Shown: in pieces, positions 206-29,203 of the stretch
How positions within the stretch are numbered: position 1 is the first letter of the stretch
How the letters are laid out: each line of letters begins with the position of its first letter
Virus record (IMG/VR): IMGVR_UViG_3300042540_001399
Coordinates: 226,888 to 290,887 of that record
Length of the DNA: 64,000 bases
Reading direction: 5' to 3' (one strand)
Notes under the pieces: model-generated
Database searches by the model: none
Told to the model about the DNA's origin: nothing
What the model saw: only the letters and a program-made list of their open reading frames with translations
Made by a program: the position numbers and the translations under genes

Positions 206-277
206 GGTCGGTTCATCTAGGGGTCAGGATACAAGGTTTTCATCCTTGTCACACGGGTTCGAATCCCGTACCGACTA
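206..277 (+). tRNA. tRNA-Glu(TTC)
   Basis: Acceptor GGTCGGT/ACCGACT, anticodon arm CAAGG-TTTTCAT-CCTTG, T arm ACGGG-TTCGAAT-CCCGT; CCA not encoded. Confidence 0.93.
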
Positions 278-302
278 CAAACCTGTCAAGGTAGTACAGG
301 AA

Positions 303-418
303 GGTCAGGAGTGTAATGAGGCACGGTGCCAAGTCCTAAAGACACCACGGTCCAAGAGCAATTTGGACGCGAGAAGTTATAAGGTTGCTCATTGTAGGTT
401 CGAATCCTACCCTGACTT
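303..418 (+). ncRNA. Atypical tRNA-like RNA (116 nt) with enlarged central region
   Basis: Acceptor GGTCAGG/CCTGACT and canonical T arm GTAGG-TTCGAAT-CCTAC; no canonical 7-nt anticodon loop; ~47-nt extra region. Confidence 0.6.
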
Positions 419-420
419 CA

Positions 421-525
421 CGGTTCGGATCATCACCGAATAGTATGCCCAATACGATGAGAAATGAGGTGATACCTCATATGGGACTTCTGATAGATAA
501 AGGATCTATTCGGTTTGACTAACCG
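421..525 (+). ncRNA. Putative structured RNA between tRNA genes
   Basis: ACCGAATAG(435-443)/CTATTCGGT(506-514) perfect 9-bp pairing, internal ATGAGGT-GAT-ACCTCAT hairpin, outer CGGTT/AACCG. Confidence 0.35.
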
Positions 526-574
526 CGGGAAATATCAAAGAGGGTTGAAGAACTACGTACCCTCGAGTCCAATT

Positions 575-649
575 GGTCCATTGGTGTAGTGGCTAACATT
601 CATCCCTGTCACGGATGAGCCGCGAGTTCGATTCTCGCATGGACCGCCA
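575..649 (+). tRNA. tRNA-Asp(GTC)
   Basis: Acceptor GGTCCAT/ATGGACC, anticodon arm CATCC-CTGTCAC-GGATG, T loop TTCGATT, encoded CCA. Confidence 0.95.
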
Positions 650-671
650 AACTTATTAAAAATTAACCATT

Positions 672-941
672 ATGAAAACTTTTCAAGACTTGGAATTTAT
701 AAAAATAAATGATGCACCGTTTATGGTTGGTAAAAAATCCCGTATGCATTTTGATAATGGGTTCGGTGTATCTGTTGTATCACACTCTTATTCATATGGG
801 GGTCGTGATGGTCTTTATGAAGTCGCGGTCCTTGACTCTGACGACAATCTTACCTACGATACTCCAATAACCAATGATGTAATGGGTTACTTAACTGAAC
901 AAGATGTTACTAATGTCATGAAACAAGTTCAAGAGCTATAA
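672..941 (+). CDS. Hypothetical phage protein (89 aa)
   Basis: Clean ATG ORF with A-rich leader; no recognised motif. Confidence 0.7.
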   Translation: MKTFQDLEFIKINDAPFMVGKKSRMHFDNGFGVSVVSHSYSYGGRDGLYEVAVLDSDDNLTYDTPITNDVMGYLTEQDVTNVMKQVQEL

Positions 942-1026
942 AAGATGACAGTTTTTTTATTCATAACATTTTTAACGACACTTTTTTTGTTGAGAAAAAA
1001 AAGAAAGTTTTAAGTAGATAAAAAAA

Positions 1027-1100
1027 GGTCTCTTAGCTCATTAGGTTAGAGCAACTGACTCATAATCAGTAGGTGGTTGGTTCGATCCCAACAGGGACCA
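1027..1100 (+). tRNA. tRNA-Ile2/Met(CAT), most like the lysidine-type Ile2
   Basis: Acceptor GGTCTCT/AGGGACC, anticodon arm CTGA-CTCATAA-TCAG, overall resemblance to bacterial ileX-type tRNAs. Confidence 0.9.
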
Positions 1101-1145
1101 CAAAAGTATTGAATATTTTAAAACAGAAATTATTATTTATAATAT

Positions 1146-1219
1146 GCACCCGTAGCTCAGCTGGATAGAGCAACTGCCTTCTAAGCAGTAGGTCAATGGT
1201 TCGAATCCATTCGGGTGTA
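1146..1219 (+). tRNA. tRNA-Arg(TCT)
   Basis: Acceptor GCACCCG/CGGGTGT, anticodon arm ACTGC-CTTCTAA-GCAGT, T loop TTCGAAT. Confidence 0.95.
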
Positions 1220-1260
1220 CTTTTTTTTTATTTTTTTTTTGGAAATCAAAAAGTTTCCTG

Positions 1261-1291: not shown

Positions 1292-2041
1292 ATGACAACA
1301 GACATCACAGCACAGGTAAAAAATTACAACGGTAAAAATTCATTCATTTTGAAAATGAAAGACGCAATTAGTAAATATGGATCACTTACTGTGAACCAAA
1401 AATCTGCAGTAGAAAAAATTTTTAAGAATGTTGATGAAGTAAAGTCAGTTGAAATGACTGAAGATCTTAAGAAAATTGCATCCTATGACGGGCCAAATTC
1501 TTTTGTTTTGGATATTAAAAATAAACTTACTCAATATGGTAAACTTTCTGAAAAACAAATTTCGGCTGGTTTGAAGCAAATCGACAAAGAACAAAACAAA
1601 ACTGTTGTTCGTAAAGTTAATGTACCAGCAATTGGTGATACTATCAAAGTTGGTAGAAAAATTGGTCAACAACTTAAAGAAAAATACGGTCTTAATTTTA
1701 ACCCAATTTTGTTGGACATCACAAAAGTTTTATCGTTTTCTGCTAAAGCTGTAAAATTTTCAGGTAAAATGACCGTAAAACGTGGTGACGTTTGTGTGTG
1801 TTGTGCAAAAACTCTTACCGATGAGTTTTCAATGTTAACTAAAATGGGTAAGACATGTGCGAAACACATGGGTGTTGAGTACATCACAGACGCAAGTGAG
1901 GCGGATAAATTCCGTGAAGAGTACCTACGTCGTGTTGAAGAAATTGGTGAAATGGAATTTTGGGTTCCAAATTCCCAAATTAAATCTTGGGAAGGAGACA
2001 CTAATGTTCTTCAAAAAATGTCACACCTTTGGTTCAAATAA
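1292..2041 (+). CDS. Hypothetical protein with C-terminal DUF6011-like zinc-finger
   Basis: CxxC...LTD..S...MG..C motif (CVCCAKTLTDEFSMLTKMGKTC); start moved to ATG 1292 because the track's 1196 start lies inside tRNA-Arg. Confidence 0.7.
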   Translation: MTTDITAQVKNYNGKNSFILKMKDAISKYGSLTVNQKSAVEKIFKNVDEVKSVEMTEDLKKIASYDGPNSFVLDIKNKLTQYGKLSEKQISAGLKQIDKEQNKTVVRKVNVPAIGDTIKVGRKIGQQLKEKYGLNFNPILLDITKVLSFSAKAVKFSGKMTVKRGDVCVCCAKTLTDEFSMLTKMGKTCAKHMGVEYITDASEADKFREEYLRRVEEIGEMEFWVPNSQIKSWEGDTNVLQKMSHLWFK

Positions 2042-2136
2042 AAAAAAAGTGGGGTTTGTTCATCAATAGAACGGCCCCACTCATTTTGTATTTTTTTGTT
2101 AAAATTTTTTATTATTTATATTATAAACATCATCAC

Positions 2137-2226
2137 ATGGACAACTCAATCATAGCGGCAATATTAACACCAATAGTTCTATTTGGTATTTTTCTTTATT
2201 TCTACTTTACAGATAAAGAATACTAA
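2137..2226 (+). CDS. 29-aa single-pass membrane peptide
   Basis: MDNSIIAAILTPIVLFGIFLYFYFTDKEY; TATTTAT motif at 2113-2119. Confidence 0.45.
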   Translation: MDNSIIAAILTPIVLFGIFLYFYFTDKEY

Positions 2227-2230
2227 AGTT

Positions 2231-2839
2231 TTATTTTATATCGGTAGACTCTAAAAGTGTGTAAGAAAATTTGTTACCATGGATTTTTGCCGCTTTTTTA
2301 CATATTGACATAAATTCATCAAAATCTTTAACTCTTTTAAATACCTGACATCCTTCGGACCAATTTTCAACCCAAGTCGAGTCCTGACCGGCTTTGTGTA
2401 TGTTAATACCAAACATTCCTGTGTCTGTTTTAGTTTCTTCAAAAATTAAATCTTTATTAGAATCTCTCCAAACTGTTACATTACCTAATCTTTGGCAAAG
2501 AGCGTCGTATTTCCCTTGATGTTTATCAATTTTCCAAACACCTCGATACTGGCCGGGTACTAATCTTGCAACGCCATTTTTGTTGTGAAATTCCATGACC
2601 CCTTTTTTACCAGGATCACATGTTGCCATCCAACAATGAAATTTCCAACTGCCTGTTTCGTCTTTATAAGTTATCGTTAGACAATCATCAAAAACATTTG
2701 TGACTTTGTCAGCAACACTTGGTTCATTATTTCTAACACCAACAATATTTACATCATAACCTTTGTTAGATGCGTCGTCAAACCATTTAAAATTTTTTGA
2801 TTTGACAGTAGTTTCTATTTGTTCTTTTGTATAACACAT
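2231..2839 (-). CDS. L,D-transpeptidase (YkuD)-like protein
   Basis: C-terminal GINIH...WSEGCQV resembles the H-x(14-17)-S-x-G-C catalytic motif. Confidence 0.5.
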   Translation of the reverse strand: MCYTKEQIETTVKSKNFKWFDDASNKGYDVNIVGVRNNEPSVADKVTNVFDDCLTITYKDETGSWKFHCWMATCDPGKKGVMEFHNKNGVARLVPGQYRGVWKIDKHQGKYDALCQRLGNVTVWRDSNKDLIFEETKTDTGMFGINIHKAGQDSTWVENWSEGCQVFKRVKDFDEFMSICKKAAKIHGNKFSYTLLESTDIK

Positions 2840-2904
2840 AATATATTTTTTTTTATAAATATAAAGTTTTTCAAAAAGTAAATAGTTTGATAATATTTAT
2901 TAAT

Positions 2905-4662
2905 ATGTCAAAATTGTCTAAAGTATCTTTTTTTATTTCGATAGTGATTATGTCAATTTATTTTGTGACACAATCTTTACTTGTGACAGGAAACATAAGT
3001 TATAGTAAAAATATCGGTTATGCTGGATATATATGTTTTTTACTTTTTGTATCTTTTTTTGGGATTTACATTTATGAATATTTGAAAAAAAACAAAAAAA
3101 TAAAAAAAAGAAGTGATTACGTTAAAAAATTAAATGAAACATTAATATATCAATCATTAAATTCTTCTTTTTTCGAAGGTAACACGTCAGAAGGCGCTAA
3201 AGTTCTAACTAAAGAAGTCAGTAATTCAATCAATGCTGACAGATGCTCAGTTTGGTTGTACAATACAGACAGAACTTCAATTATTTGTCAACAATTGTAT
3301 TCCAAAAAAACTGACAGCTGGGAACAAAATTATGAATTATTAAAAGAAGATTATAAACCTTATTTTTTATCTCTTTTATTAAATCCTATCATAGTTGCAA
3401 ATGATGCAAGAAATCATAGTGCAACATCATGTTTTAAAGACACTTATCTTGACCCATTGGGTATTAAATCTATGCTTGATGTTCCCATTTCCTACAAGGG
3501 AGACACTATTGGGGTAATATGTATTGAAAATTTTGATTTTAGAATTTGGGACCAAGTTGAAATTGATTTTGCTCAAATGTTATCAGCATTATATTCATTT
3601 GCATATTCAATAAAAGAAAATAATAATGTTAATAAGACAATTGATGATATTGAAGGATTTATAGATCATTCGGTATTAGTAAGTAAAACGGATTCTAAGG
3701 GTAAGATAGTTTATGTGAATAAAAAGTTTGAAGATGTTTCTGGTTGGAAACTTAGTCAGGTAATAGGAAAAGATCATAACATTGTTAATTCAGGAAAACA
3801 TACCAAAAATTTTTGGAAAGACATGTATAAAACAACAGTAGAAAAAAGAAAGATTTGGAACCAAATAGTTACAAATAAAACAAAAAAAGGTGAACTTTAT
3901 TGGGTTGATTCTTATATAATGGCAGAATTTGACGAACAAGATTGTTTAAAAGGGTTTATGTCTATAAGGTATGATGTTACAGATTTGATAAAAAAAACTG
4001 AAGAAATAGCGAAGAAAAATGTTTATTTGGAACATGCCGCAAAAATATTAAGACATGATATGCATTCAGGAATTAATACTTACATACCAAGAGGGATAAG
4101 TTCGTTAGAAAGAAGATTGAGTGATAACCAAATTCAAGAATATAAATTGGAAGCCCCTTTGAAAATGTTGAAAGAAGGTCTCAAACACGCTCAGAAAGTT
4201 TATAAAGGTGTTTATGAATTTACTAATTTAGTAAAAAAAGATTCAGTGCTCAACAAAACTAAAGTAAACTTAAAAGAAATATTAGAAAGTTACCTATCAA
4301 CAACATCATATAAATCACAAGTTGTAATTGATACTTTAGAAGACCATGAAGTTAATGAACCTTTATTTTGTACCGCCATCGATAATTTAATTAGAAATGG
4401 CCTCAAATATAATGACAATGATAACAAATTTGTACATTTATATATGGAAGATTTTCAGTTGGTAATTCAGGATAATGGAAGGGGGCTGTCACAAGAAGAA
4501 TTTGACAATTTATCGAAACCATACGTAAGAAAAGAAAACCAAAAAGAAAGTGGTAGTGGTTTAGGTTTAAATATATGTTTAGCAATACTCAAAGAACACG
4601 GATTCAGCGTTTCTTGTGAAAAAAACCATATAGGCACTAAAATTAAAATTAAATTCAAATGA
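2905..4662 (+). CDS. Membrane sensor histidine kinase, 2TM-GAF-PAS-HisKA-HATPase (HK1)
   Basis: Two N-terminal TM helices; GAF (ADRCSVWL...IKSMLDVPI..GVICIE); PAS (YVNKKFEDVSGW..GKDHNIVNSG..NKTKKGELYWV); H box LRHDMH; N box NLIRNGLKYN; G1 QDNGRGL; G2 GSGLGLNIC; start set at ATG 2905. Confidence 0.92.
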   Translation: MSKLSKVSFFISIVIMSIYFVTQSLLVTGNISYSKNIGYAGYICFLLFVSFFGIYIYEYLKKNKKIKKRSDYVKKLNETLIYQSLNSSFFEGNTSEGAKVLTKEVSNSINADRCSVWLYNTDRTSIICQQLYSKKTDSWEQNYELLKEDYKPYFLSLLLNPIIVANDARNHSATSCFKDTYLDPLGIKSMLDVPISYKGDTIGVICIENFDFRIWDQVEIDFAQMLSALYSFAYSIKENNNVNKTIDDIEGFIDHSVLVSKTDSKGKIVYVNKKFEDVSGWKLSQVIGKDHNIVNSGKHTKNFWKDMYKTTVEKRKIWNQIVTNKTKKGELYWVDSYIMAEFDEQDCLKGFMSIRYDVTDLIKKTEEIAKKNVYLEHAAKILRHDMHSGINTYIPRGISSLERRLSDNQIQEYKLEAPLKMLKEGLKHAQKVYKGVYEFTNLVKKDSVLNKTKVNLKEILESYLSTTSYKSQVVIDTLEDHEVNEPLFCTAIDNLIRNGLKYNDNDNKFVHLYMEDFQLVIQDNGRGLSQEEFDNLSKPYVRKENQKESGSGLGLNICLAILKEHGFSVSCEKNHIGTKIKIKFK

Positions 4663-5261
4663 AAAAAATTTTTTTATTATTCAACTTTTTATTTATAACT
4701 TTTTTGTTACACGGACAAAATTCTTACCCAATCCAAACAATTTTAAAGGGTGATTCAGTTGTAATTTATACCACAGATCAATCAAATGATTTGAATTTGA
4801 CAATAGAAAATCAAAGATTCTTATCATCTACTTATAAAACTAAACTTGAAGACTATAGTAAAAAAATTGACAGTTTAGAAAAAAACATAAATAATAAACA
4901 GATGGTAATAGATAGTTTATATTTAACACATAAAAATCAAGACAGTTTACAACAAAGATTATACGTACTTGAAAATTGGTTAATAAAAGCATCAATTGAC
5001 AACTCTTACATTTATATGTCATGGCCAGATCATACTATTAAATTTGTGGATTTAACATTATATACAGTTCATTGTAGTATGCAAAATGGTACTTTAAGAA
5101 TGATTAGAAGAGGACCAAATGATGAATTTGAAATTTGGAAAGGATTAAATTATATTAGAAAAGAAAGTCCAGAAATTGGTTGGGAAATGAAATATACTGA
5201 AGACGAACGACCAATAGTAAAAAATCTACCAATAAACATAAAAATTAACGACTACAAATAA
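4659..5261 (+). CDS. Secreted/periplasmic coiled-coil protein
   Basis: Signal-peptide-like N-terminus MKKIFLLFNFLFITFLLHG, heptad region; ATGA overlap with HK1. Confidence 0.75.
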   Translation: MKKIFLLFNFLFITFLLHGQNSYPIQTILKGDSVVIYTTDQSNDLNLTIENQRFLSSTYKTKLEDYSKKIDSLEKNINNKQMVIDSLYLTHKNQDSLQQRLYVLENWLIKASIDNSYIYMSWPDHTIKFVDLTLYTVHCSMQNGTLRMIRRGPNDEFEIWKGLNYIRKESPEIGWEMKYTEDERPIVKNLPINIKINDYK

Positions 5262-5262
5262 G

Positions 5263-6717
5263 ATGAAAAAAATAATTTTTATTCTTTTAATATTGTTTTC
5301 ATTCTACAATATAACAATCGCACAAGGACTTATCAAAAATAAAAAAGAAATTACCGAGTCTATGTGGGATCAAGGAGTGCCTGTCTTACCTGAAGATGAA
5401 TATATTTCATCTTTAATTGATAAAGTTGGATTCGATAACTTAAGACAAAGAAATAAAGCCGTTAACAAAGAAGAAGCTAAATTGTGTAGAGAAATTGGTA
5501 TTGCTTTTTACAATAGAGAAATGTATGAAGCTGCTGATTGGTATTTGGAAAGAGTACGAGGTTTTGTTGAAGTTGTTGAACTTGAACCTGAAATAGTTTT
5601 TGAAACTAAAAAAGAAGAAACCGAAGAACCTTCAGAAGATTTATCTGTGGAAGATTTGAAAAGTCTACAGTCAGACAAGGTTTTTTTACAAAACCTACCA
5701 AAAAGTTATGAAAATGTTTCACCTACAGATATGAAAAAATTGGCAGAAGAAATTGAAGGTCAAATAGAAAAACTTATTAAAGAAAAGGAAGAATTACTAA
5801 AAAGACACGCTCCTAAAGAAGTGATAGATGCTAAAGATGCGACTATAGGGTCATTAGGAAAAGAAAAAAAAATCATAGACCTATCAATAGATAAAGACAA
5901 ACTTAAAAATGAAACAAAAGTTTTGGGTATTGAAAAAAGAAATTTGAAATTTTATTTAAATTGGGCAATAGCTATAGGTTTGATATTAATATTAATAATA
6001 TTTGTTTTAATACAGAGAAAAACTATCAAAGGACAGGATAAAGAAATTGATAAACAACTAAATGACATAAATACTAAAAACACGTATTTAGAACATGCGG
6101 CAAGAATAATCAGACATGATATGCATTCTGGTATAAACACATATATTCCAAGGGGTATATCTTCTTTGGAAAAAAGGCTGACTGTCGACGACATGAAAAA
6201 TCTTAAGATCGAAGGTCCAATAAAGATGATTCGTGAAGGTTTAAATCACACCCAAAAAGTTTATAAAAATGTTTATGAATTTACAAATTTAGTTAAACAA
6301 AATGTTGTTTTAGAAAAAACCAAACAAAATATAAAAAATACTTTAGAACAGTTTTTTGTAAAAACATCATACTATAATCAAATCAAAATAAAGAATCTCC
6401 CGACTTTAGAAATTAATGAAGTTCTTTTTTGTGGGGCAATTGAAAACTTTGTGAAAAATGGTCTAAAATACAATAATAACGAAAATAAAGAAGTTTTAAT
6501 TTTTGAAGAAGATAATTATATAGTAGTACAAGATAATGGTATTGGTATGACATCAACTGAATTTGAAAAACAAATTAAAATAGTTTCTAAAGAAGATATT
6601 GGTGAAATCGGTTTAGGCTTAAATATTTCAATTGCCATTTTAAAAGAACACGGATTTAGTGTTGAATGTGAAAAAAATGAAATTGGAACTAAAATAAAAA
6701 TTAAATTTAAAAGTTAA
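5263..6717 (+). CDS. Sensor histidine kinase with extracytoplasmic helical domain (HK2)
   Basis: Signal peptide, TPR-like helices and coiled coil, one TM (WAIAIGLILILIIFVLI), H box IRHDMH, N box NFVKNGLKYN, G1 QDNGIGM, short G2 EIGLGLNIS. Confidence 0.88.
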   Translation: MKKIIFILLILFSFYNITIAQGLIKNKKEITESMWDQGVPVLPEDEYISSLIDKVGFDNLRQRNKAVNKEEAKLCREIGIAFYNREMYEAADWYLERVRGFVEVVELEPEIVFETKKEETEEPSEDLSVEDLKSLQSDKVFLQNLPKSYENVSPTDMKKLAEEIEGQIEKLIKEKEELLKRHAPKEVIDAKDATIGSLGKEKKIIDLSIDKDKLKNETKVLGIEKRNLKFYLNWAIAIGLILILIIFVLIQRKTIKGQDKEIDKQLNDINTKNTYLEHAARIIRHDMHSGINTYIPRGISSLEKRLTVDDMKNLKIEGPIKMIREGLNHTQKVYKNVYEFTNLVKQNVVLEKTKQNIKNTLEQFFVKTSYYNQIKIKNLPTLEINEVLFCGAIENFVKNGLKYNNNENKEVLIFEEDNYIVVQDNGIGMTSTEFEKQIKIVSKEDIGEIGLGLNISIAILKEHGFSVECEKNEIGTKIKIKFKS

Positions 6718-6721
6718 AAAA

Positions 6722-7159
6722 ATGATTGATTCTATTTTATTAGTTGATGATGAGGATTTATTCCACTTGGTGTTTGAAGACGCTTGTTCTTTATTGGACA
6801 TAAGTTTATCTTTAAAATCTATAAATAGTGCAGATGAAGCGGCATCAATGTTTAAAAAATGGTTAGAAGAAAAAACACCAGAAAGTAGACCTGAATGTGT
6901 TTTTGTTGATCTTAATATAATTGGTAGTTCATTTGATGGTATTGAACTTATAAGAAAAATAAATTTCGAATACGGAAATCATGTTGTAATAGGAATTATT
7001 TCATCATCTAACGAACCAGAAGAACAAGCTAAAGCACTACAAGCAGGTGCACAATTTTGGATTATAAAATCTGATGAAATTGAACCTAGACTTGAAGAAT
7101 TCAAAAAAGATTATGATCAGTATAAAAACAGAACCGCACCATTTAAAGTATACAAATGA
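6722..7159 (+). CDS. Single-domain response regulator (CheY-like receiver)
   Basis: ILLVDDED acidic pocket, phospho-acceptor in VFVDLN, IISSS, conserved K in WIIK; no output domain. Confidence 0.92.
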   Translation: MIDSILLVDDEDLFHLVFEDACSLLDISLSLKSINSADEAASMFKKWLEEKTPESRPECVFVDLNIIGSSFDGIELIRKINFEYGNHVVIGIISSSNEPEEQAKALQAGAQFWIIKSDEIEPRLEEFKKDYDQYKNRTAPFKVYK

Positions 7160-7833
7160 TTAAAATAGATAGTAATACTAAAAAAACTTTAATTGATCTT
7201 TATAACAAAAAGGGTATAGGTCTTGAAGGTAATATTACTAAACTTATAGATGTTGAAAACGACGAAGAGTTCAAAACGTATTTAAAAGAATGTAAGGCTA
7301 AAGACGAAGAAAAAAGAAAAAAACGTCTTGACATGACAAAAAAAATACAAAAACAAAATGAAGATTTGGTTGTTGCAAACACAGAAAACAATAGAATTAT
7401 GGAGGAACTTCAACAAAGTTTACTTGAAGTTGAAGAATCCAAAACAATTTTTGAAAACCAAAACAAAGAACTCAACGATTGGAAAAAAGAAAATTTAGAA
7501 CTGACTGAAAAATTACAAATTGAAATGTCAAACGCTGAAATGGCTAAGTTAGAAGCCTTGAAGGCTAAGGAAATGGCGGAAAATGATTTAGACTTGTTAC
7601 AGAAAAAAAATCAAACAGAACTTATTTCTACTATAGTCAGAGTTGCTTTATGGGTAATTGTTGGTGTTGGTATAATTACTACTGGTGTTTATATGTTCAC
7701 TTTATTATTAGGTAAAGACACACAGGTTATTAGTGCTGCGTGGTCAAATATTTTTGGTATTTTACTTACCAATGCATTTTCAATAGTGGGTACTATTATG
7801 GGGATTAAATATGCAACTGAAAATAAACAATAA
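7156..7833 (+). CDS. Coiled-coil protein with two C-terminal TM helices
   Basis: Long heptad region then VALWVIVGVGIITTGVYMFTLLL and AAWSNIFGILLTNAFSIVGTIMGI; ATGA overlap with the receiver gene. Confidence 0.8.
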   Translation: MIKIDSNTKKTLIDLYNKKGIGLEGNITKLIDVENDEEFKTYLKECKAKDEEKRKKRLDMTKKIQKQNEDLVVANTENNRIMEELQQSLLEVEESKTIFENQNKELNDWKKENLELTEKLQIEMSNAEMAKLEALKAKEMAENDLDLLQKKNQTELISTIVRVALWVIVGVGIITTGVYMFTLLLGKDTQVISAAWSNIFGILLTNAFSIVGTIMGIKYATENKQ

Positions 7834-7843
7834 AAAATAGATT

Positions 7844-8680
7844 ATGTTACTTAAAGTAGGATCAGAAGGGGCTGATGTAAAAAAACTCCAAGAAAAATTA
7901 GGTGTTGAAACAATAGGAAAGTTTGGACCTAAAACCGAAGCTGCGGTAAAAGCATGGCAAAAAGCAAATGGATTAAAAGATGATGGTATTGTTGGTGATG
8001 CAACTTGGAGCAAAATGTTTGGGGAATCTACCCCAAAAACAAATGTTATTAAAGAAGATGTTGTTATACCAAGTGGTGGTCCTTTAAATATTGAAAAGTT
8101 AAAAGGACACATACCTGATTCTGTTTTGGCCCAAATTCCGGAAACCGCAAAAAAATTTAATATTACAAACAATTTAAGATTAGCACACTTTTTATCACAA
8201 TGTGGTCATGAATCTGGTGGATTCAAAGCTGTCAGTGAAAATTTAAATTATTCAGCCGATGGTTTAAAAAAGATTTTTGGAAAATACTTTCCGGGTAACC
8301 TGAATGAATCTTACGCTCGTAAACCCGAAAAAATTGCGTCCCGTGTTTATGGTAACAGGATGGGAAATGGTGATGAGGCGTCAGGCGAAGGATATAAATT
8401 CAGAGGTAGGGGTTACATCCAACTTACAGGAAAAAGTAACTATACAAATTTTTCTAAATTTATAGGTGAAGATTGTGTTTCAAATCCTGATTTAGTTGCA
8501 ACAAAATATCCTTTAGCGTCTGCGGCATTCTTTTTTGATTCAAATAAATTGTGGTCTATTTGTGACAAGGGAGCCGATGATGCCACTGTTACATCTGTAA
8601 CCAAAAGAGTTAATGGGGGAATTTTAGGTTTATCAGACAGAATTAAACACTTTAAAGAGTATTATAACCTTATTAAGTGA
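7844..8680 (+). CDS. Endolysin: peptidoglycan-binding domain plus glycoside hydrolase family 19
   Basis: PG_binding_1 (LKVGSEGADVKKLQEKL..GKFGPKTEAAVKAWQ..DGIVGDATW) and GH19 motifs (LAHFLSQCGHES, ENLNYS, FRGRGYIQLTGKSNY, TKRVNGG). Confidence 0.93.
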   Translation: MLLKVGSEGADVKKLQEKLGVETIGKFGPKTEAAVKAWQKANGLKDDGIVGDATWSKMFGESTPKTNVIKEDVVIPSGGPLNIEKLKGHIPDSVLAQIPETAKKFNITNNLRLAHFLSQCGHESGGFKAVSENLNYSADGLKKIFGKYFPGNLNESYARKPEKIASRVYGNRMGNGDEASGEGYKFRGRGYIQLTGKSNYTNFSKFIGEDCVSNPDLVATKYPLASAAFFFDSNKLWSICDKGADDATVTSVTKRVNGGILGLSDRIKHFKEYYNLIK

Positions 8681-8716
8681 TATTTATAATAAAATAAACC
8701 ATAAAAAACAAATTTT

Positions 8717-8884
8717 ATGAAATTAACTAAAGAACAAATTATGGGAATTATCAGACACGGACTAACATTCGTAGGTGGTATTCTTATAATGAAAGGGCTT
8801 GTTACTGAGTCAGTCGTTGCAGACATAACTGGTGCACTTATGACTTTAACAGGTGCTATTTGGTCTATTGTTGATAAAAAATAA
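8717..8884 (+). CDS. Small 2-TM holin-like protein (55 aa, not in ORF track)
   Basis: MKLTKEQIMGIIRHGLTFVGGILIMKGLVTESVVADITGALMTLTGAIWSIVDKK, directly after the endolysin; resembles Pam3-gp28-type putative holins. Confidence 0.75.
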   Translation: MKLTKEQIMGIIRHGLTFVGGILIMKGLVTESVVADITGALMTLTGAIWSIVDKK

Positions 8885-8901
8885 ATTGTGTAAATAGACT
8901 T

Positions 8902-8930
8902 AAAAACCCTCGATAATTTCGGGGGTTTTT
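8902..8930 (+). terminator. Rho-independent terminator
   Basis: AAAAACCCTCGA-TAAT-TTCGGGGGTTTTT hairpin with U tract. Confidence 0.75.
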
Positions 8931-8967
8931 ATTTTTGTAACATATTTATTATATAAAAATTAAATTT

Positions 8968-9624
8968 ATGAAAAAGTTGATAACTGAAAACGAAAAAAAT
9001 AGAATTAGAAAAATGAATTCTATTGATGAAAGTTTATTTTCAGATGTGTTGGCATCAATACAAAAATCAGAAACTTTTCAGGATCTTAAAAAGAAATTCA
9101 AGGAATTAACGGGTGTTGACTTTGAAGAAAAAGAAAAGTCGGGAGATGTAAGCAAAGATTTCAAAAATTATAAAATTACCGAACCTAATGATGATGACAT
9201 CAAGTTTTATAAAAAAATACTTGAAAAATTGGACGCACCTAATACTAAAGAAAATTTAGCGTTTCTTTACGCGTGGAGACAAGCGGAGGGTGCAAAATCC
9301 GCCTTTAACCCTTTTAATACCACACAAGAAATGGATAGTTCAACATTTATGAACTGTCTGAAGAAAAAAGATAATAAGTGTATTGGGGGAGTTAGAAATT
9401 ATAAATCTGAAAAAGATGGAATAGATGCTACAGTCAAAACTTTGAAAAATGGTAGATATGATTGTATTGTTAATGGTTTACAAAAAAATAAAGGGTCAAA
9501 AGATATCGCCAAATGTAGTTCTTTAGATACTTGGGGAACAAAAGACGGTATTTTAAGAGTTTTAGATGGTGGTAAAATAAATCCACCTGAAATATCAAGA
9601 TCCACAATAAAAAAAGTTGATTAA
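8968..9624 (+). CDS. Virion-type protein with lysozyme-like C-terminal domain
   Basis: AWRQAEG..FNPFNTTQ..GVRNY..DGIDATVKTLKNGRY pattern; N-terminal LITE..RIRKM..IDES motif. Confidence 0.55.
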   Translation: MKKLITENEKNRIRKMNSIDESLFSDVLASIQKSETFQDLKKKFKELTGVDFEEKEKSGDVSKDFKNYKITEPNDDDIKFYKKILEKLDAPNTKENLAFLYAWRQAEGAKSAFNPFNTTQEMDSSTFMNCLKKKDNKCIGGVRNYKSEKDGIDATVKTLKNGRYDCIVNGLQKNKGSKDIAKCSSLDTWGTKDGILRVLDGGKINPPEISRSTIKKVD

Positions 9625-9625
9625 T

Positions 9626-10234
9626 ATGGAAGAATACGTAGGGATTATTATTGCGTTTATAACAGGTGTGTTGGGACCAATATTACTTTTATACTTGAAA
9701 AACAAATTAGAAAAAAAAGAAAAGCCAGACATGGTCAAAGACACTCTGAGAGTTGCTGAGTTGGTAAATAATAAAATTGAACATATTCGTGAAGAATTTA
9801 ATGCCGATCGTGTTTGGGTTACACAATTTCATAATGGTGGTAATTTTTATCCTACAGGTAAATCAATGGCAAAATTTTCAATAATGTATGAAACAGTAAA
9901 TTCTGGCGTTTCTTCAGTTCAAACTAATTTTCATAATATACCTGTTAACCTTTTTTCTAAGTCTATAAATCAATTATTAAATAACGATACTATTGAAATT
10001 GCCGACTACAAAGATGAAACAATAGCAACTTACGGACTAAAATATATTGCTGAAGATACAGGTTGTAAATCAAGTTACTTATTTGCAATAAAAACAATTG
10101 ATGAAAAGTTTATTGGTACATTAGGTTTAGATTATACCAAAAGAAAAACTAAATTAGATATTGAATCTATAAATCATTTATTGGTTCACGCAACGTCTTT
10201 AGGTGGTGTTTTGATGACACACTTGTCTGAATAA
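9626..10234 (+). CDS. N-terminal TM plus GAF-like domain protein (T4 holin T-like architecture)
   Basis: TM GIIIAFITGVLGPILLLYL; GAF-like region NADRVWVTQFHNGG...LFAIKTIDEKFIGTLGLDY. Confidence 0.55.
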   Translation: MEEYVGIIIAFITGVLGPILLLYLKNKLEKKEKPDMVKDTLRVAELVNNKIEHIREEFNADRVWVTQFHNGGNFYPTGKSMAKFSIMYETVNSGVSSVQTNFHNIPVNLFSKSINQLLNNDTIEIADYKDETIATYGLKYIAEDTGCKSSYLFAIKTIDEKFIGTLGLDYTKRKTKLDIESINHLLVHATSLGGVLMTHLSE

Positions 10235-10269
10235 TTTTTTATTACAAAAAAATTTATTATTTTTGTAGT

Positions 10270-10758
10270 ATGAATATTTTTTTTCTTGACTACGATACCC
10301 AAAAATGTGCACAATATCATTGCGATAAACATGTGGTCAAGATGGTATTAGAAACTGCACAACTTTTATGTGGGGTTCATCATACAACCCCCCAAGTTAC
10401 CCCCCAAGTTCCCTACAAGTTATCCCACAAAAATCACCCATGCGCAATATGGACTCGTGAAAGTTTATCAAACTACTTATATCTTTGTGATCTTGGTTTA
10501 GAATTATGTAATGAATATAGTTTTAGATATGGTAAAACACATAAGTCACAACAAGTAATCGAGTGGTGTCTTGATAATAAACCAAACATAGTTGATAAAG
10601 GTTTTACCACACCACCAAAAGCAATGCCCGATGAATATAAAGTTTTTGACGTTATTGAATCTTATAGAAACTACTATCGTGGGGCAAAAAAAAGTTTTGC
10701 TTCATGGAAAAATAGACAAATACCCGATTGGTTTCAAACTGATGAAGTATTTATATGA
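10270..10758 (+). CDS. Pyrimidine-dimer DNA glycosylase / endonuclease V-like protein
   Basis: MNIFFLD..CAQYHCDKHVVKMVLETAQLL and HKNHPCAIW motifs of the Pyr_excise family; TATTTTTG promoter element at 10258. Confidence 0.8.
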   Translation: MNIFFLDYDTQKCAQYHCDKHVVKMVLETAQLLCGVHHTTPQVTPQVPYKLSHKNHPCAIWTRESLSNYLYLCDLGLELCNEYSFRYGKTHKSQQVIEWCLDNKPNIVDKGFTTPPKAMPDEYKVFDVIESYRNYYRGAKKSFASWKNRQIPDWFQTDEVFI

Positions 10759-12296
10759 TAAAATCATATATGAAAGGTTTATTAAATGAACATTTGACTA
10801 GAATAAGATCATTGATGTCTATCAATGAATCTTTAGTTGATGCATACCCAAAATTTTCGAAAAAAATATTTGATGAAGTAGACCCTACTTGGGGTGGTGG
10901 GCCAAATTCGCATTCATCAAGACACCCTGATGCATCCGGCAAAGATTGGTTTAGTAATAACGCATACGACATCATGGCACCTGAAGGGACACCAATATAT
11001 TCAATATCGGAAGGTTATGTTGATAAAATTACCGACAATCCACCAGGTTTAAGATCAGTTGGTGGTAAGAGAATTTATGGGGACAGTTTAACCATTAGAG
11101 GAACAGGGGGTGATCCCGATGTTTTCTACACACATGTAACAAAAATTGTTGTTGAAGAGGGACAATACGTTGATAGGGGTCAATTATTAGCATTCATAAT
11201 CAAAGGGGAGTTGGGTATACCTGAACACGTTCATGTTGCAGTAAAAGTTGGTGATGTGAAAGATTTCTTAGATGTTGATGGAAACATAAACAGAGTCAAT
11301 ATTGATTTAGTGGATAGACTAAAAATCTTACCAACAAACAAGGAACTTGAAGTGACAACCGACCCAAAAACAATAATGGGCGCTGCGGCCGGTCTTACCG
11401 CATCAGCTATAAGTTCTTTAAATATTAATAGACCTGAGTCTGACATCAGTGGCATTGCAACAAGATTCGGTATTAAAGATACTGATGTTAACATGGATTC
11501 GGTATCAGGTGTTTTGAATAAAATAATATTATCTTCTGAAGGTCTTGGTACTGATGAAACTGGAATTCATGATGCAATAAAGAAATTAAAAAGTTGTTAT
11601 GAACTTGATGAAATTAACAAAATTGTAGAAAGAAAAGAAATCGACGGAAAAAAATACAAAGACATTTATGATTATATAAATAGTGAAATGAATTATGGTG
11701 ATGAGCTGTTTGTAAAAAGTTTAGTAAAAACCATAAATAATATATGTCCTGATACCGTAACTGATAAAGGTACTCAAATAGTGAAAGTAACAAGATCATC
11801 ATCTTTAGGATCTGGAATCGATAGAGTCAGTCCTATAAAATTATTAAATGATCTAAAATCATATGGATTATCTGATAAGGCCGCCAAAGGTGTTGTTGCG
11901 AATGCTTTTGGTGAAAGTGGGTTTAACGTTAAGGCTAAAGGAGATTCTGGACCCAACGCCGAAAACAACACAAGATCAATAAATATAGATGGTAAAAAAT
12001 ACTGTTCGTTTGGATTGTGGCAATATAATGTCTGTGGTGGTATGGGGGTTTCTTATTTGAAGAACTATAATATAGATGTTGACAGATCAACAGACGCTGA
12101 AAAAATCAGGGTTCTATTTGATTATAATAAACAAATTGAATTTATGTCTAAAAGAATTAAAGAAGAACAATCCAAAAGCGAAAAAGATGTTAGAACATGG
12201 ATTGATTGGATTGTTGATAATGTAGAAAGACCATCAGATAGATACGGTGCAAAAATGAAAAGACAAGAATTTGCAAAACAACAAGGTTGGTCTTAA
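10755..12296 (+). CDS. Multidomain wall hydrolase: M23 peptidase, annexin-like repeat, phage tail lysozyme
   Basis: M23 (AYDIMAPEGTPIY..YTHV..HVHVAV); GLGTDE annexin-like segment; tail lysozyme (GLSDKAAKGVVANAFGESGFN..SFGLWQYN). Confidence 0.8.
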   Translation: MIKSYMKGLLNEHLTRIRSLMSINESLVDAYPKFSKKIFDEVDPTWGGGPNSHSSRHPDASGKDWFSNNAYDIMAPEGTPIYSISEGYVDKITDNPPGLRSVGGKRIYGDSLTIRGTGGDPDVFYTHVTKIVVEEGQYVDRGQLLAFIIKGELGIPEHVHVAVKVGDVKDFLDVDGNINRVNIDLVDRLKILPTNKELEVTTDPKTIMGAAAGLTASAISSLNINRPESDISGIATRFGIKDTDVNMDSVSGVLNKIILSSEGLGTDETGIHDAIKKLKSCYELDEINKIVERKEIDGKKYKDIYDYINSEMNYGDELFVKSLVKTINNICPDTVTDKGTQIVKVTRSSSLGSGIDRVSPIKLLNDLKSYGLSDKAAKGVVANAFGESGFNVKAKGDSGPNAENNTRSINIDGKKYCSFGLWQYNVCGGMGVSYLKNYNIDVDRSTDAEKIRVLFDYNKQIEFMSKRIKEEQSKSEKDVRTWIDWIVDNVERPSDRYGAKMKRQEFAKQQGWS

Positions 12297-17429: not shown

Positions 17430-17457
17430 AAAAGGAGGACTTTTAATCCTCCTTTTT
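17428..17457. terminator. Bidirectional terminator
   Basis: AAAAAAGGAGGA-CTTTTAA-TCCTCCTTTTT between convergent peptidase and clpC genes. Confidence 0.75.
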
Positions 17458-19503
17458 CTTTCTACCTTTTTTCTTGGGTTCAGGTTTAGATCTATCTTCT
17501 ATACTTATTGTTTGTGTTTCTCCTTCTCCCTCAACAAATAACATATAATCAGTTCCTTCGACAACTTCGTTTGTTAGAATTTTTTCAGAAATAAGATCTT
17601 CTATTTTATCTTGTATTGCTCTTTTTATTGGTCTTGCACCATATTGGTCATCAAACCCAACTTTTGATATGAAATCAATGACAGAATTTTCATATGAAAC
17701 TTTGTATTTCATAGATGATAATCTAGAAATGAGTTTATCAATTTCTAATTTAACAATTTTATCTATGTGATCTTTTTTAAGTGAATTAAAAATAATAACG
17801 TCATCAATTCTATTTAAAAATTCAGGTGCAAAAAACTTACTTAATTCTTTTTTAAGAATGTCTCTTTTATATTCTTCTTGGATTGCATCACTATTATTAT
17901 TTGTTTTAAAACCAACACCACTACCAAAATCCTGTAATTTCTTTACCCCAATATTTGATGTCATAATTATTAGGCAATTTTTGAAATTTATTTTTCTGCC
18001 TAATCCGTCAGTTAAATGGCCATCATCCAACAATTGAAGTAATGTGGAAAAAACATCTTTATTTGCCTTTTCAATTTCATCAAACAAAATTACAGAATAA
18101 GGTTTGTTCTTTACTTGCTCTGTTAATTGACCCCCTTCTTCATGACCAACGTATCCTGGTGGTGATCCTATCAAACGTGAAATGGTATGTTTTTCTTGAA
18201 ACTCACTCATATCTACCCTAATTAAACTATCTTCACTACCAAATATTTCTTTTGCCAATTGTTTTGCTAAAAAAGTTTTACCAACACCTGTTGATCCTAA
18301 AAATATAAAAGAACCAATTGGTCTATTTGGATCTTTTATACCTACCCTATTTCTTCTTATAGATTTAGAAATTTTACCTACAGCTTCTTCCTGTCCAATT
18401 ACATTTTTATTTAATGTTGTTTCAAGATTGACTAAAGAATTTTTTTCATCAATGTTTATTTTACTAACAGGAATTTTAGTCATGTTGGACACAACTTCGT
18501 AAATTAGTTCTTCAGGTATACCCCTTTTACTATTTTTAAGGTCTTCTTCAAATTTCTTTTTTTCTTCTTCAAGTTTTAAGAGAATACTTCTTTCACGATC
18601 CCTAAGTTCTGCCGCTTGTTCATAATTTTGTTTTTTTATGACATTAAGTTTTTCTTGTTTAATTTCTTGGGCTTCTATTTTCAATTTTTCAATTGACTCG
18701 GGTAGTTTAATATCTATTTGCATTCGTGACCCAACCTCATCTAAAATATCAAAAGCTTTATCTGGAAATTCCCGATCGGTAATATATCTATCCGCTAGCT
18801 CAACACATAACCAAAGTGAATCATCAGTGTAATTAACTTTGTGATGTTCTTCATACTTCGATTTACTTTGTTTCAGAATTTCAAAAGTTTCTTCTTTTGT
18901 TGATGGATCTACAATAATTTTTTGAAACCGTCTTTCTAAAGCCCCATCTTTTTCGAAATGTTTTCTATACTCATCTAAAGTGGTTGCTCCAATACACTGT
19001 ATTTCACCTCTTGAAAGTGCTGGTTTAAATATGTTTGATGCATCCAAAGAACCCGAGCTATTACCGGCACCAACCATAGTGTGAATTTCGTCGATAAAAA
19101 GAATAATGTTAGGCGTGTTTTGAAGTTCTTCTATTATAACTTTCATTCTTTCTTCAAACTGACCTCTATATTTTGTTCCAGCAACAATAGAATTTATATC
19201 TAAGGAAACTATCCTTTTATCTACTAAATTTTTTGGACAATCGCCACTATAAATCATCATTGCCAAACCTTCTGCAATTGCCGTTTTACCTGCACCTGGT
19301 TCTCCAATAATAATAGGATTATTTTTCTTTCTTCTTGAAAGAACTTGAGCAATCCTAAAAATTTCTTTTTCTCTACCAATTACTGGATCTAATTTACCTT
19401 GTTCGGCAAGTTTAATTAAATCTTTACTAAAATTGTCTAAAACAGGCGTTCCACCATCTGTCTTTTTTTTGTTTTTTTCATTATCATCTACAAAATCTAA
19501 CAT
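17443..19503 (-). CDS. clpC: ClpC-type Hsp100 AAA+ ATPase lacking the N-terminal Clp-repeat domain
   Basis: Walker A motifs GEPGAGKT and GSTGVGKT, IDEIH, FDEIEKA, UVR middle domain (KQNYEQAAELRDRE), FAPEFLNRID, GARPIKR; begins directly at the first ATPase domain. Confidence 0.9.
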   Translation of the reverse strand: MLDFVDDNEKNKKKTDGGTPVLDNFSKDLIKLAEQGKLDPVIGREKEIFRIAQVLSRRKKNNPIIIGEPGAGKTAIAEGLAMMIYSGDCPKNLVDKRIVSLDINSIVAGTKYRGQFEERMKVIIEELQNTPNIILFIDEIHTMVGAGNSSGSLDASNIFKPALSRGEIQCIGATTLDEYRKHFEKDGALERRFQKIIVDPSTKEETFEILKQSKSKYEEHHKVNYTDDSLWLCVELADRYITDREFPDKAFDILDEVGSRMQIDIKLPESIEKLKIEAQEIKQEKLNVIKKQNYEQAAELRDRERSILLKLEEEKKKFEEDLKNSKRGIPEELIYEVVSNMTKIPVSKINIDEKNSLVNLETTLNKNVIGQEEAVGKISKSIRRNRVGIKDPNRPIGSFIFLGSTGVGKTFLAKQLAKEIFGSEDSLIRVDMSEFQEKHTISRLIGSPPGYVGHEEGGQLTEQVKNKPYSVILFDEIEKANKDVFSTLLQLLDDGHLTDGLGRKINFKNCLIIMTSNIGVKKLQDFGSGVGFKTNNNSDAIQEEYKRDILKKELSKFFAPEFLNRIDDVIIFNSLKKDHIDKIVKLEIDKLISRLSSMKYKVSYENSVIDFISKVGFDDQYGARPIKRAIQDKIEDLISEKILTNEVVEGTDYMLFVEGEGETQTISIEDRSKPEPKKKGRKKKED

Positions 19504-25308: not shown

Positions 25309-25346
25309 AAATAAAAATTTGTTAGCTATTTATAAATAAAAACATT

Positions 25347-29182: not shown

Positions 29183-29203
29183 TATTTATAAATAAAAAAA
29201 ATT

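Follow-up and report, generated by a model that had tools for sequence, protein, structure and literature searches.

A phage-encoded two-component system found beside lysis genes in a freshwater jumbo phage

Phages are generally thought to time lysis with a holin clock, and only a few add-on sensors are known. An example of these is the lysis inhibition system of T4, in which the holin T, the periplasmic antiholin RI and the cytoplasmic RIII allow signal-dependent, post-translational postponement of holin triggering, with inputs from both the periplasm and the cytoplasm. Phage-encoded environmental sensing is so far known mainly for lysis-lysogeny switches, such as VqmA-Phi of VP882, arbitrium (AimR/AimP) and the agr genes of phiCDHM1, including the AgrC kinase, in which a phage carries its own sensor to time a life-cycle decision, acting through transcription factors. 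In bacteria, two-component systems can be linked to membrane proteins of the holin/antiholin type and to murein hydrolase activity, as in LytSR-LrgAB/CidAB of the Firmicutes, but this control is cellular and transcriptional, involving a LytTR DNA-binding regulator. Stand-alone receivers can also act through protein contacts, for example in the DivJ/PleC-DivK-DivL cascade of Caulobacter and in other cascades in which a single-domain receiver controls a kinase by binding it. In three-component systems such as LiaFSR and PhoQ-MgrB, a small membrane protein encoded in the same operon as the kinase and regulator regulates the kinase, and the regulator binds DNA.

Here we describe a locus in a roughly 290 kb freshwater jumbo phage which, like thousands of uncultured relatives, carries its own sensor-kinase and receiver system together with an uncharacterised membrane-anchored protein. 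The window analysed is a stretch of 64,000 nucleotides (positions 226,888 to 290,887 of IMG/VR record IMGVR_UViG_3300042540_001399). An earlier note, made from the sequence alone, had described seven contiguous plus-strand genes in which two kinases and a receiver precede lysis genes, and had interpreted these as a late phage operon encoding a phosphorelay hard-wired to lysis. The observation was confirmed gene for gene, with every ORF and spacing as described (Table 1), whereas the interpretation is only partly supported.

Table 1. Features of the signalling and lysis gene cluster and its flanks, with coordinates in the 64,000-nt window.
Coordinates	Strand	Feature	Spacing to the next gene	Observations
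2231..2839	-	Divergent neighbour, peptidoglycan-hydrolase-like protein		phrog_3000 (2.6e-36) and phrog_33083, endolysin (9e-12); own ATATTTATA motif at 2854-2862 on the minus strand; directly upstream of the module in 9 of 41 neighbourhoods; in relative locus L004 the same domain is fused behind a PG_binding_1 domain
2893..2901	+	ATATTTATT promoter-like motif	4 nt before the HK1 ATG	
2905..4662	+	HK1, sensor kinase	4-nt overlap	Two N-terminal hydrophobic segments (2 TM), GAF (E 4.6e-13), PAS (1.6e-8), divergent DHp (predicted phospho-acceptor His384 in the RHDMHSGINTY box), HATPase_c (1.1e-13; 52 bits)
4659..5261	+	Exported accessory protein (predicted)	1-nt gap	Signal peptide with an invariant Gln at the predicted cleavage site, beta-hairpin, long helix (75 residues), small beta domain; no Pfam, PHROG or NCBIfam match
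5263..6717	+	HK2, sensor kinase	4-nt gap	Signal-like N-terminus, periplasmic region of about 210 aa with no Pfam match ending in a coiled coil, TM segment, predicted DHp (His285), HATPase_c (1.1e-8; 36 bits)
6722..7159	+	RR, stand-alone receiver, 145 aa	4-nt overlap	Response_reg only (1.2e-9; 38.7 bits, cut-off 30.2)
7156..7833	+	cc2TM, coiled-coil protein with a C-terminal TM hairpin; proposed target and effector of the RR	10-nt gap	Small N-terminal domain (invariant E24-G25-N26), continuous helix 37-185 running into TM1, TM2 (190-222) with a near-invariant polar motif
7844..8680	+	Endolysin	36-nt gap	PG_binding_1 (51.3 bits) plus Glyco_hydro_19 (38.3 bits, cut-off 25.5); phrog_181 (5e-68); nearest DNA matches are annotated endolysins of Flavobacterium and Cellulophaga phages
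8680..8688	+	Second ATATTTATA motif	28 nt before the holin start codon	
8717..8884	+	Holin, Pam3 gp28 family, 55 aa		PF23987 (1.1e-15; 57.8 bits, cut-off 27); two hydrophobic segments
8901..8931	+	Intrinsic terminator-like hairpin		13 pairs, then a T run; the only one on the + strand in 2000-10500
9617..10234	+	Possible further lysis-cassette gene		N-terminal TM plus a globular domain of roughly 175 aa; holin_LLH E 0.0096, below cut-off; frequent companion of the endolysin in relatives

The window encodes TerL, a portal protein, a major head protein and 4 tRNAs, and by its terminase, portal and head protein the phage is a distant relative of T4. The GC content of the cluster (0.28) equals that of the rest of the window, and the same arrangement was found at 100% identity in four independent metagenome assemblies. 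At least 492 IMG/VR loci encode the RR, on contigs of up to 322 kb, and the RR makes at least 3,059 protein clusters and cc2TM at least 7,535. The claim in the earlier note that the cluster is phage-resident rather than a host fragment is therefore supported.

The note had also reported that the operon starts with the same TATTTAT motif as the capsid, portal and terminase genes, which holds and can be sharpened. ATATTTATW occurs 25 times against 9.7 expected, and 0 of 100 shuffles reach 25. ATATTTAT is the most enriched 8-mer in the sense-strand 60 nt upstream of genes, where it is found for 12 of 63 genes (14.8-fold). The full ATATTTAT precedes HK1, the holin, gene 8968, the gene after portal, the capsid gene and others, while terminase and two other genes carry only the TATTTAT core. 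In most relatives TATTTAT sits at -11 to -13 from the ATG of the first kinase, and 34 of 50 unique loci have it within -80..+20. In the phage studied here, however, the motif lies closer to the HK1 ATG than the 12-19 nt seen for most genes, so the transcript start is uncertain.

Both kinases and the receiver appear to have competent parts, as judged from sequence. HATPase_c was detected above the Pfam cut-off in HK1 and HK2 and in 61 of 61 relatives, and the N, G1 and G2 boxes (N..NG.KYN, DNGxG and GLGL) are conserved in 75 unique kinase cores, as is the H-box RHDMHSGINTY. This box lies about 54 residues before the conserved motif of DHp helix 2, from which the kinase profile matches HK853 through the ATP-binding domain (E 2.8e-10). 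Full-length NCBIfam kinase models align across the region, but no Pfam HisKA-type family matches it, even at E<=1. In the RR, D9, D10, D63, S94-96 and K116 are invariant in 58 unique sequences. The HK1 and HK2 cores are 61% identical, their DHp helix 1 is almost identical, and there is only one RR in the window, so two inputs plausibly converge on one receiver. In the loci surveyed the exported protein occurs only together with an HK2-type kinase. The designation of the system as a phosphorelay in the earlier note is not supported, since cc2TM has no invariant histidine and no Hpt protein or second receiver is present in the window.

The invariant partner of the RR is cc2TM, rather than the endolysin or holin. 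The start of cc2TM overlaps the RR stop by 4 nt in 51 and by 1 nt in 12 of 64 unique loci, and in every phage locus with sequence downstream of the RR, cc2TM is the next gene. An AlphaFold2 model of cc2TM predicts one 150-residue helix running into the TM hairpin (pLDDT 86), and TM2 is near-invariant. In Bacteroidota-type contigs the gene directly after the orthologous RR (70-72% identical) carries the same N-terminal ~110 aa fused to a HisKA/HATPase core instead of a TM hairpin (hhalign probability 99.1%, E 4e-19). This marks the N-terminal domain as the likely target of the RR. Searches with cc2TM of Pfam, PHROGs, NCBIfam, PDB sequences, PDB folds and BFVD folds gave no match other than an uncharacterised orthologue, and it has no similarity to the adjacent holin or to any known holin or antiholin.

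Linkage to lysis genes in relatives, the absence of which had been named beforehand as grounds for rejecting the interpretation, is frequent but facultative. The GH19 endolysin is the commonest neighbour, occurring in 23 of 41 distinct neighbourhoods (at most 9 of 41 for any other gene) and in at least five different arrangements on both sides of the module. The gap from cc2TM to the endolysin is 10-13 nt in most relatives (at most 24 nt, with one predicted overlap), and none of 22 has a TATTTAT motif in it. In the phage studied here the endolysin has no promoter motif or terminator of its own, and it should therefore be co-transcribed with the signalling genes from the late-type motif. Where the endolysin lies divergently upstream, no small membrane protein flanks it, so the kinase and cc2TM are the only membrane proteins nearby. 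However, 17 of 41 neighbourhoods have no recognisable lysis gene within four genes, and no peptidoglycan hydrolase family appears among their neighbours, which include Hsp70, NusG, ThyX, gp32, DnaB, RNR and topoisomerase-like genes. Linkage was gained or lost at least 9 times on the RR+cc2TM tree, with lysin-linked members in both deep clades. "Hard-wired" is thus too strong.

Comparison with the systems outlined above shows both parallels and differences. No Pfam, PHROG or structure hit to T, RI or RIII was found for any gene of the cluster, the holin here belongs to the Pam3 gp28 family, and signalling would use His-Asp phosphotransfer. As in the Caulobacter cascade, two kinases would converge on one stand-alone receiver acting through protein contacts, and in the bacterial relatives the receiver is followed by a kinase carrying the receiver-associated N-domain, although the families and domains are unrelated and in the phages the downstream protein has a transmembrane hairpin in place of a kinase core. 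With respect to LytSR, the RR has no DNA-binding domain, and the kinases have GAF/PAS or periplasmic sensors rather than a LytS 5TM domain. Unlike the accessory proteins of LiaFSR and PhoQ-MgrB, cc2TM follows the receiver with translational coupling and shares its N-domain with a kinase input domain. None of the phage-encoded sensing systems is known to combine kinases, a stand-alone receiver and a membrane effector, and literature searches found no prior description of such a system.

We tentatively favour the view that this is a self-contained, phage-encoded signalling cascade whose output is a membrane protein, not transcription. In this view, a membrane-anchored kinase with cytoplasmic GAF/PAS sensors (HK1) and a kinase with a periplasmic domain (HK2, helped by the exported protein) together set the phosphorylation state of a single CheY-like receiver, which then acts on the small cytoplasmic N-terminal domain of cc2TM. 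The signal would travel down the 150-residue helix into the highly conserved transmembrane hairpin, as inside-out signalling. As the cascade in this phage would be transcribed as one unit with the endolysin, just ahead of the holin, the most likely role of the hairpin is to advance or delay the membrane step of lysis (holin triggering) according to cytoplasmic and envelope cues, which would be a functional analogue of T4 lysis inhibition. The gene content and intact catalytic motifs, the residence in phages, the invariant coupling of RR and cc2TM, the portability of the cc2TM N-domain and the preferential but facultative linkage to the endolysin are established by our analysis. In contrast, phosphotransfer, binding of the RR to the N-domain, the action of the hairpin and any effect of cc2TM on lysis, hole formation by the holin and late co-transcription are inferred from sequence alone. 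Control of lysis timing is the best-supported role, but it remains an inference from position. A recognisable holin is already present, and bacterial versions of the kinase-RR-N-domain cascade sit in non-lysis contexts, so the cascade itself is not intrinsically about lysis. The RR is also the most conserved protein of the module (82-92% identical across relatives, against 46-77% for cc2TM and about 37-76% for the kinases), which could instead point to a conserved host target.

The alternative that survives best, although we consider it somewhat unlikely, is that the cascade is a real phage signalling unit whose membrane output controls something other than lysis, such as superinfection exclusion, membrane energisation or permeability, envelope remodelling, or host motility and secretion. 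The frequent position next to the endolysin would then be inherited synteny that is easily lost. The module is intact and equally conserved in the 17 neighbourhoods without lysis genes, its linkage is labile, a separate holin exists, cc2TM has no similarity to holins, and T4-like phages typically scatter their lysis genes. Against this, the endolysin is by far the commonest neighbour, it stays adjacent through rearrangements that replace all other flanking genes and even flip its side and strand, lysin-linked members occur in both deep clades, and in this phage it lacks its own promoter motif.

It is less likely that cc2TM is a membrane accessory that feeds back on the kinases, like LiaF for LiaS or MgrB for PhoQ, with a conserved host protein as the true target of the receiver. 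This would explain why the RR is so strongly conserved across phages whose kinases and cc2TM have diverged much more, and three-component systems with an operon-encoded membrane regulator provide a precedent. However, the occurrence of the same N-domain on a soluble kinase core directly after the RR in bacteria fits a domain that receives the RR signal better than a membrane regulator of the upstream kinase. In addition, the TM segments of the kinases vary in number and sequence while TM2 of cc2TM is near-invariant, and RR-cc2TM persists in one relative locus (L078) without a recognisable adjacent kinase.

It is more doubtful still that the kinases and receiver mainly interfere with host two-component signalling, as a phosphate sink or by cross-phosphorylating host regulators in a host-takeover device, with cc2TM only tethering the receiver to the membrane. 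Close cellular homologues of the kinase core and RR (61-72% identical) exist in a few Bacteroidota contigs, so cross-talk with a host pathway is conceivable, and phage proteins that perturb host two-component systems are known, for example PIT4 (PMC10714779). These homologues are rare, however, as only 3 of the best 120 RR clusters are close to the bacterial copy and only 3 clusters carry the fused N-domain, and the unusual, invariant DHp helix and the invariant RR helix 1 suggest an insulated private pair. Finally, although two-component genes are typically cellular and tblastn of HK2, RR and cc2TM against 50,697 deposited phage genomes found nothing, a host fragment, recent moron or assembly chimera with no role in the phage cycle is effectively refuted by the identical independent assemblies, the hundreds of viral contigs carrying the cluster, its phage-like GC, the phage promoter motif conserved in front of it and the purifying selection on its catalytic residues.

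Independently of the biological role, two parts are new for two-component signalling. The cc2TM N-domain looks like a previously unrecognised receiver-binding input domain, seen on both a membrane hairpin and a kinase core, and the kinases carry a predicted DHp variant that no Pfam HisKA model detects. A complete sensory pathway of modular kinases, a CheY-like receiver and a dedicated membrane protein is carried by thousands of uncultured phage lineages and is under strong purifying selection. It is possible, though on present evidence less likely than not, that a very large and so far undescribed clade of environmental jumbo phages, probably infecting Bacteroidota, uses its own His-Asp pathway, with interchangeable cytoplasmic and periplasmic sensors and a new type of inside-out membrane effector, to decide when the host cell is lysed. 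This would be the first virus-encoded two-component system with a post-translational output, and a second, mechanistically independent invention of lysis inhibition. If the system controls lysis, it gives a tractable means of asking how viruses integrate host physiology and envelope signals into the decision to burst the cell, a decision which matters for burst size, phage ecology in lakes and phage-based applications.

The seven genes of the cluster are tightly packed on one strand, with overlaps of 4 nt, gaps of 1, 4 and 10 nt and then 36 nt before the last gene, exactly the spacing claimed in the earlier note, and domain searches confirmed each assignment. HK1 has two N-terminal hydrophobic segments followed by GAF, PAS and HATPase_c domains, and the 200-aa protein that follows it (the exported protein) has a signal peptide and no family match. 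A structural model of this protein was too weak (pLDDT 69) to justify a fold search. HK2 has a signal-like N-terminus, about 210 residues without any Pfam match, one TM segment and HATPase_c, whilst the 145-aa receiver (RR) is a receiver domain and nothing else. The 225-aa protein encoded after it (cc2TM) has no family match, the next gene is a PG_binding_1 + GH19 endolysin (phrog_181, 5e-68), and the last encodes a 55-aa predicted holin of the Pam3 gp28 family (57.8 bits against a cut-off of 27). The observation made in the earlier note is confirmed, and is here considerably extended.

The window is a phage, carrying a T4-like large terminase, a portal, a major head protein and four tRNA genes (Glu-TTC, Asp-GTC, Met-CAT and Arg-TCT) which lie just upstream of the cluster. 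Other genes of the window include a 686-aa ATP-dependent protease homologue (phrog_4871, E 2e-236), encoded on the opposite strand among + strand genes, and a 513-aa protein combining Peptidase_M23 with a phage tail lysozyme domain, which is probably a virion-associated cell-wall-degrading protein rather than part of lysis from within. That the cluster is a host fragment or an assembly chimera can be rejected, as the same sequence occurs in three IMG/VR contigs of 274-291 kb and one further metagenome contig, the module is found in hundreds of viral contigs, and its GC equals that of the rest of the window.

Positions of features in the window and in the surveyed loci (each designated L and a number)
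Sequence	Position	Strand	Feature
Window	206-1220		Four tRNA genes
Window	2231-2839	-	202-aa phrog_3000 protein
Window	2905-8884	+	Seven-gene cluster, HK1 to holin
Window	4659-4730 and 5263-5330		Gln at the predicted signal-peptidase I site of the exported protein, and Gln after the N-terminal hydrophobic segment of HK2
Window	8901-8931	+	Terminator-like hairpin just after the holin
Window	9617-10234		205-aa protein with N-terminal TM segment
Window	10755-12296		513-aa Peptidase_M23 and phage tail lysozyme protein
Window	17443-19503	-	686-aa ATP-dependent protease homologue
Window	25327-25338 and 29183-29194		TATTTATAAATA before the terminase gene and gene 29204
L004	3539-4351		phrog_3000-type domain fused behind PG_binding_1
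L015, L063 (examples)	L015:4159-6024, L063:7097-7618		Hsp70/DnaK, NusG-like protein, PrsW-type protease, ferritin and cREC-type receiver domain near the module in relatives
L026	5411-7738		775-aa SprB/PKD protein with CHU_C signal
L077	205-1967		Fragmented kinase next to the receiver
L078	522-2781		PA14-domain protein and unknown protein in place of the kinase
L101	8882-12511		Two topoisomerase II-like genes after the module
L104	5032-8432		Four-PAS protein, kinase gene and receiver

The TATTTAT motif pointed out in the earlier note is the core of a longer motif. ATATTTATW occurs 25 times against 9.7 expected, and no shuffle reaches 25. ATATTTAT is the most enriched 8-mer in the sense-strand 60 nt upstream of genes, being found in 12 of 63 genes (14.8-fold), and usually lies 12-19 nt before the start codon. 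The full 8-mer precedes the gene after portal, the capsid gene, the HK1 gene, the holin and gene 8968, among others, whereas the terminase carries only the TATTTAT core. Before the terminase gene and gene 29204 the motif reads TATTTATAAATA, a near-palindrome which contains both the TATTTAT core and the T4 late-promoter consensus TATAAATA. No such motif lies between HK1 and the endolysin, and the only terminator-like hairpin on the + strand between 2000 and 10500 is the one just after the holin. The cluster therefore looks like one late-type transcription unit with a second start in front of the holin, although this is inferred from sequence. Before HK1 the motif ends 4 nt from the ATG, and as this spacing is conserved in relatives (TATTTAT at -11 to -13 in most of 50 unique loci), the true 5' end or start codon is uncertain. 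A scan for sigma-70-type promoters was uninformative, with 49 found against 46.6 expected.

The sequence motifs of the signalling proteins are intact. In 75 unique kinase cores from related loci the box RHDMHSGINTY is nearly invariant, as are the N (N..NG.KYN), G1 (DNGxG) and G2 (GLGL) boxes. A profile of the family matches Thermotoga HK853 from DHp helix 2 through the ATP-binding domain (E 2.8e-10), and the first His of the box lies at the expected distance upstream. No Pfam HisKA-type model detects the predicted DHp, even when isolated DHp segments were searched at E<=1, so it would be a divergent variant. The HK1 and HK2 cores are 61% identical with an almost identical DHp helix 1, which, given the role of specificity residues in such kinases, implies the same partner. 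In the receiver D9, D10, D63, S94-96 and K116 are invariant in 58 unique sequences. Sensor modules vary among relatives, with PAS occurring in 41 of 61 kinases and GAF in 20 of 61, and the HK2 type having a periplasmic domain with no Pfam match. In the loci surveyed the exported protein occurs only together with an HK2-type kinase.

An alignment-based scan of IMG/VR with the receiver found at least 492 loci, of which the best 80 are 82-92% identical, on contigs up to 322 kb. The receiver family has at least 3,059 clusters at 90% identity, and cc2TM at least 7,535, none with a Pfam domain or a meaningful name. In contrast, tblastn of HK2, RR and cc2TM against the 50,697 INPHARED genomes found nothing, and only the endolysin has relatives there. 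Full-text literature searches found no description of a phage-encoded kinase-receiver system tied to lysis, and a survey of jumbo phages mentions only a divergent receiver that is never associated with kinases (PMC7824862).

Four lines of evidence point to a host among the Bacteroidota. The nearest relatives of the endolysin are in Flavobacterium and Cellulophaga phages, and the few cellular homologues lie in Bacteroidota MAGs. A related phage (locus L026) encodes, directly upstream of its kinase gene, a 775-aa protein with SprB repeats, PKD domains and a CHU_C type IX secretion signal, which appears to be a phage-encoded T9SS cargo protein. The exported protein has an invariant Gln at the predicted signal-peptidase I site, which fits the 'Q-rule' of Bacteroidetes. 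HK2 also has Gln right after its N-terminal hydrophobic segment, raising the possibility that this segment is a cleaved signal peptide rather than a TM anchor. In a higher-GC relative binned into a Verrucomicrobia MAG (L101, GC 0.43) the module is followed by two genes which, judged only from reading their N-terminal sequences, look like T4-type topoisomerase II subunits. Copies of the module on contigs with GC 0.39-0.48 suggest that it spans phages of several host groups, or that phage contigs have been mis-binned.

The invariant partner of the receiver is cc2TM. Across 70 unique loci the receiver gene is directly preceded by a kinase gene in 62, and most of the rest are cut by contig ends, the exceptions being loci L049, L077 and L078. 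In the close relatives L077 and L078 the kinase next to the receiver is fragmented (L077) or replaced by a PA14-domain protein and an unknown protein (L078), yet RR-cc2TM stays intact in both. In all 64 loci that extend far enough the receiver is directly followed by cc2TM, with an overlap of 4 nt in 51 loci and of 1 nt in 12. The AlphaFold2 model of cc2TM (pLDDT 86) shows a small N-terminal domain with an invariant Glu-Gly-Asn loop, a single helix from residue 37 to 185 that continues into TM1, and a second TM helix, 190-222. TM2 is the best-conserved part and keeps polar residues (Thr, Asn, Ser, Thr) invariant. The possibility that cc2TM is an Hpt protein, which the phosphorelay proposed in the earlier note would have needed, was rejected as it has no invariant His. 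Nor was there any sign that it is a relative of the adjacent holin or of any solved or predicted viral structure, with no signal beyond coiled-coil noise and one uncharacterised orthologue.

A domain swap in bacteria points to the mechanism. In two lineages of Bacteroidota-type contigs (locus L103 with L110-112, and L107-109), whose neighbouring genes include YceI, an AraC-type regulator and a xylose-isomerase-like protein, a kinase with the same unusual H-box (61% identical to the HK1 core) is followed by the orthologous receiver (70-72% identical). Overlapping the receiver's stop is a gene whose first ~110 residues are homologous to the N-terminal domain and proximal helix of cc2TM (hhalign probability 99.1%, E 4e-19), and the rest of that protein is an ordinary HisKA/HATPase kinase core (HK853, E 1.2e-17). 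The same domain, in the same position after the same receiver, is thus joined to a kinase core in bacteria and to a membrane hairpin in phages. This is the strongest available evidence that the receiver acts on this N-domain and that cc2TM is the output of the phage system; in this reading the long helix would transmit the signal into the membrane. A third bacterial locus (L104, on a 967-kb Bacteroidetes MAG contig) carries a four-PAS protein, a kinase gene and a receiver 65% identical to the phage one, in clearly cellular surroundings (TauE, cytochrome c, TetR, ABC1 kinase) and without any cc2TM-like gene. Only three of the best 120 receiver clusters are close to it, so transfer from phage to bacterium is possible.

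The link to lysis is less strict than the earlier note supposed. Among 41 distinct neighbourhoods with at least three genes on each side, the GH19 endolysin is directly adjacent in 16, within two genes in 21 and within four genes in 23, and no other gene exceeds 9 of 41. The endolysin may lie directly downstream on the same strand, with gaps mostly of 10-13 nt and never a promoter motif, downstream after one to three small membrane or unknown genes, or directly upstream and divergent, and in this last class no small membrane protein flanks it. Lysin-linked members occur in both deep clades of an RR+cc2TM tree, so that the absence of linkage in relatives, which had been set beforehand as grounds for refutation, was not found. 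However, 17 of 41 neighbourhoods have no endolysin nearby, and their flanking genes are Hsp70, NusG, ThyX, gp32, DnaB, RNR, PrsW and topoisomerase-like genes. A different endolysin class was sought in these neighbourhoods, but no peptidoglycan hydrolase family appears among the 25 listed of 35 matched families for 74 neighbouring proteins. Phages of this clade also encode a full-length Hsp70/DnaK, a NusG-like protein, a PrsW-type protease, ferritin and a cREC-type receiver domain close to the signalling module (e.g. loci L015 and L063). The linkage state changes at least 9 times on the tree, at least 5 of them forced by well-supported branches. The association is therefore preferential and probably ancestral, but dispensable, and is not 'hard-wired'.

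Two further proteins near the cluster may bear on lysis. The 202-aa protein of phrog_3000 (function unknown) is probably a peptidoglycan hydrolase domain, as it hits an 'endolysin' phrog and in L004, one of the surveyed loci, is fused behind a PG_binding_1 domain next to an Amidase_2 gene, although no Pfam or NCBIfam model recognises it. The 205-aa protein has an N-terminal TM segment and a roughly 175-aa globular domain, which is the topology of T4 holin T, but there is no detectable homology, only a sub-threshold holin_LLH hit. It travels with the endolysin in many relatives.

Taken together, the interpretation in the earlier note, that a two-component system is wired to the lysis genes, is only partly supported. 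Sequence and distribution firmly establish a phage-borne, many-to-one two-component cascade with a stand-alone receiver and a dedicated membrane-anchored partner, for which no prior description was found in the sources searched. Phosphotransfer, action of the receiver on the cc2TM N-domain and late co-transcription are, by contrast, deduced from sequence and gene order, as is the proposal that the membrane hairpin modulates the holin step, and hence lysis timing, which we put forward only tentatively. The main rival, itself doubtful and slightly less likely, is another membrane-directed function with the endolysin as a frequent but incidental neighbour. Both two-component signalling and the regulation of phage lysis are already known, and what is new here are two parts, namely the receiver-associated N-domain with its predicted helix-hairpin effector, and a predicted DHp variant invisible to the HisKA models searched. 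The cascade is conserved in thousands of uncultured jumbo-phage lineages, in which its membrane hairpin may modulate the holin step and so the timing of lysis.
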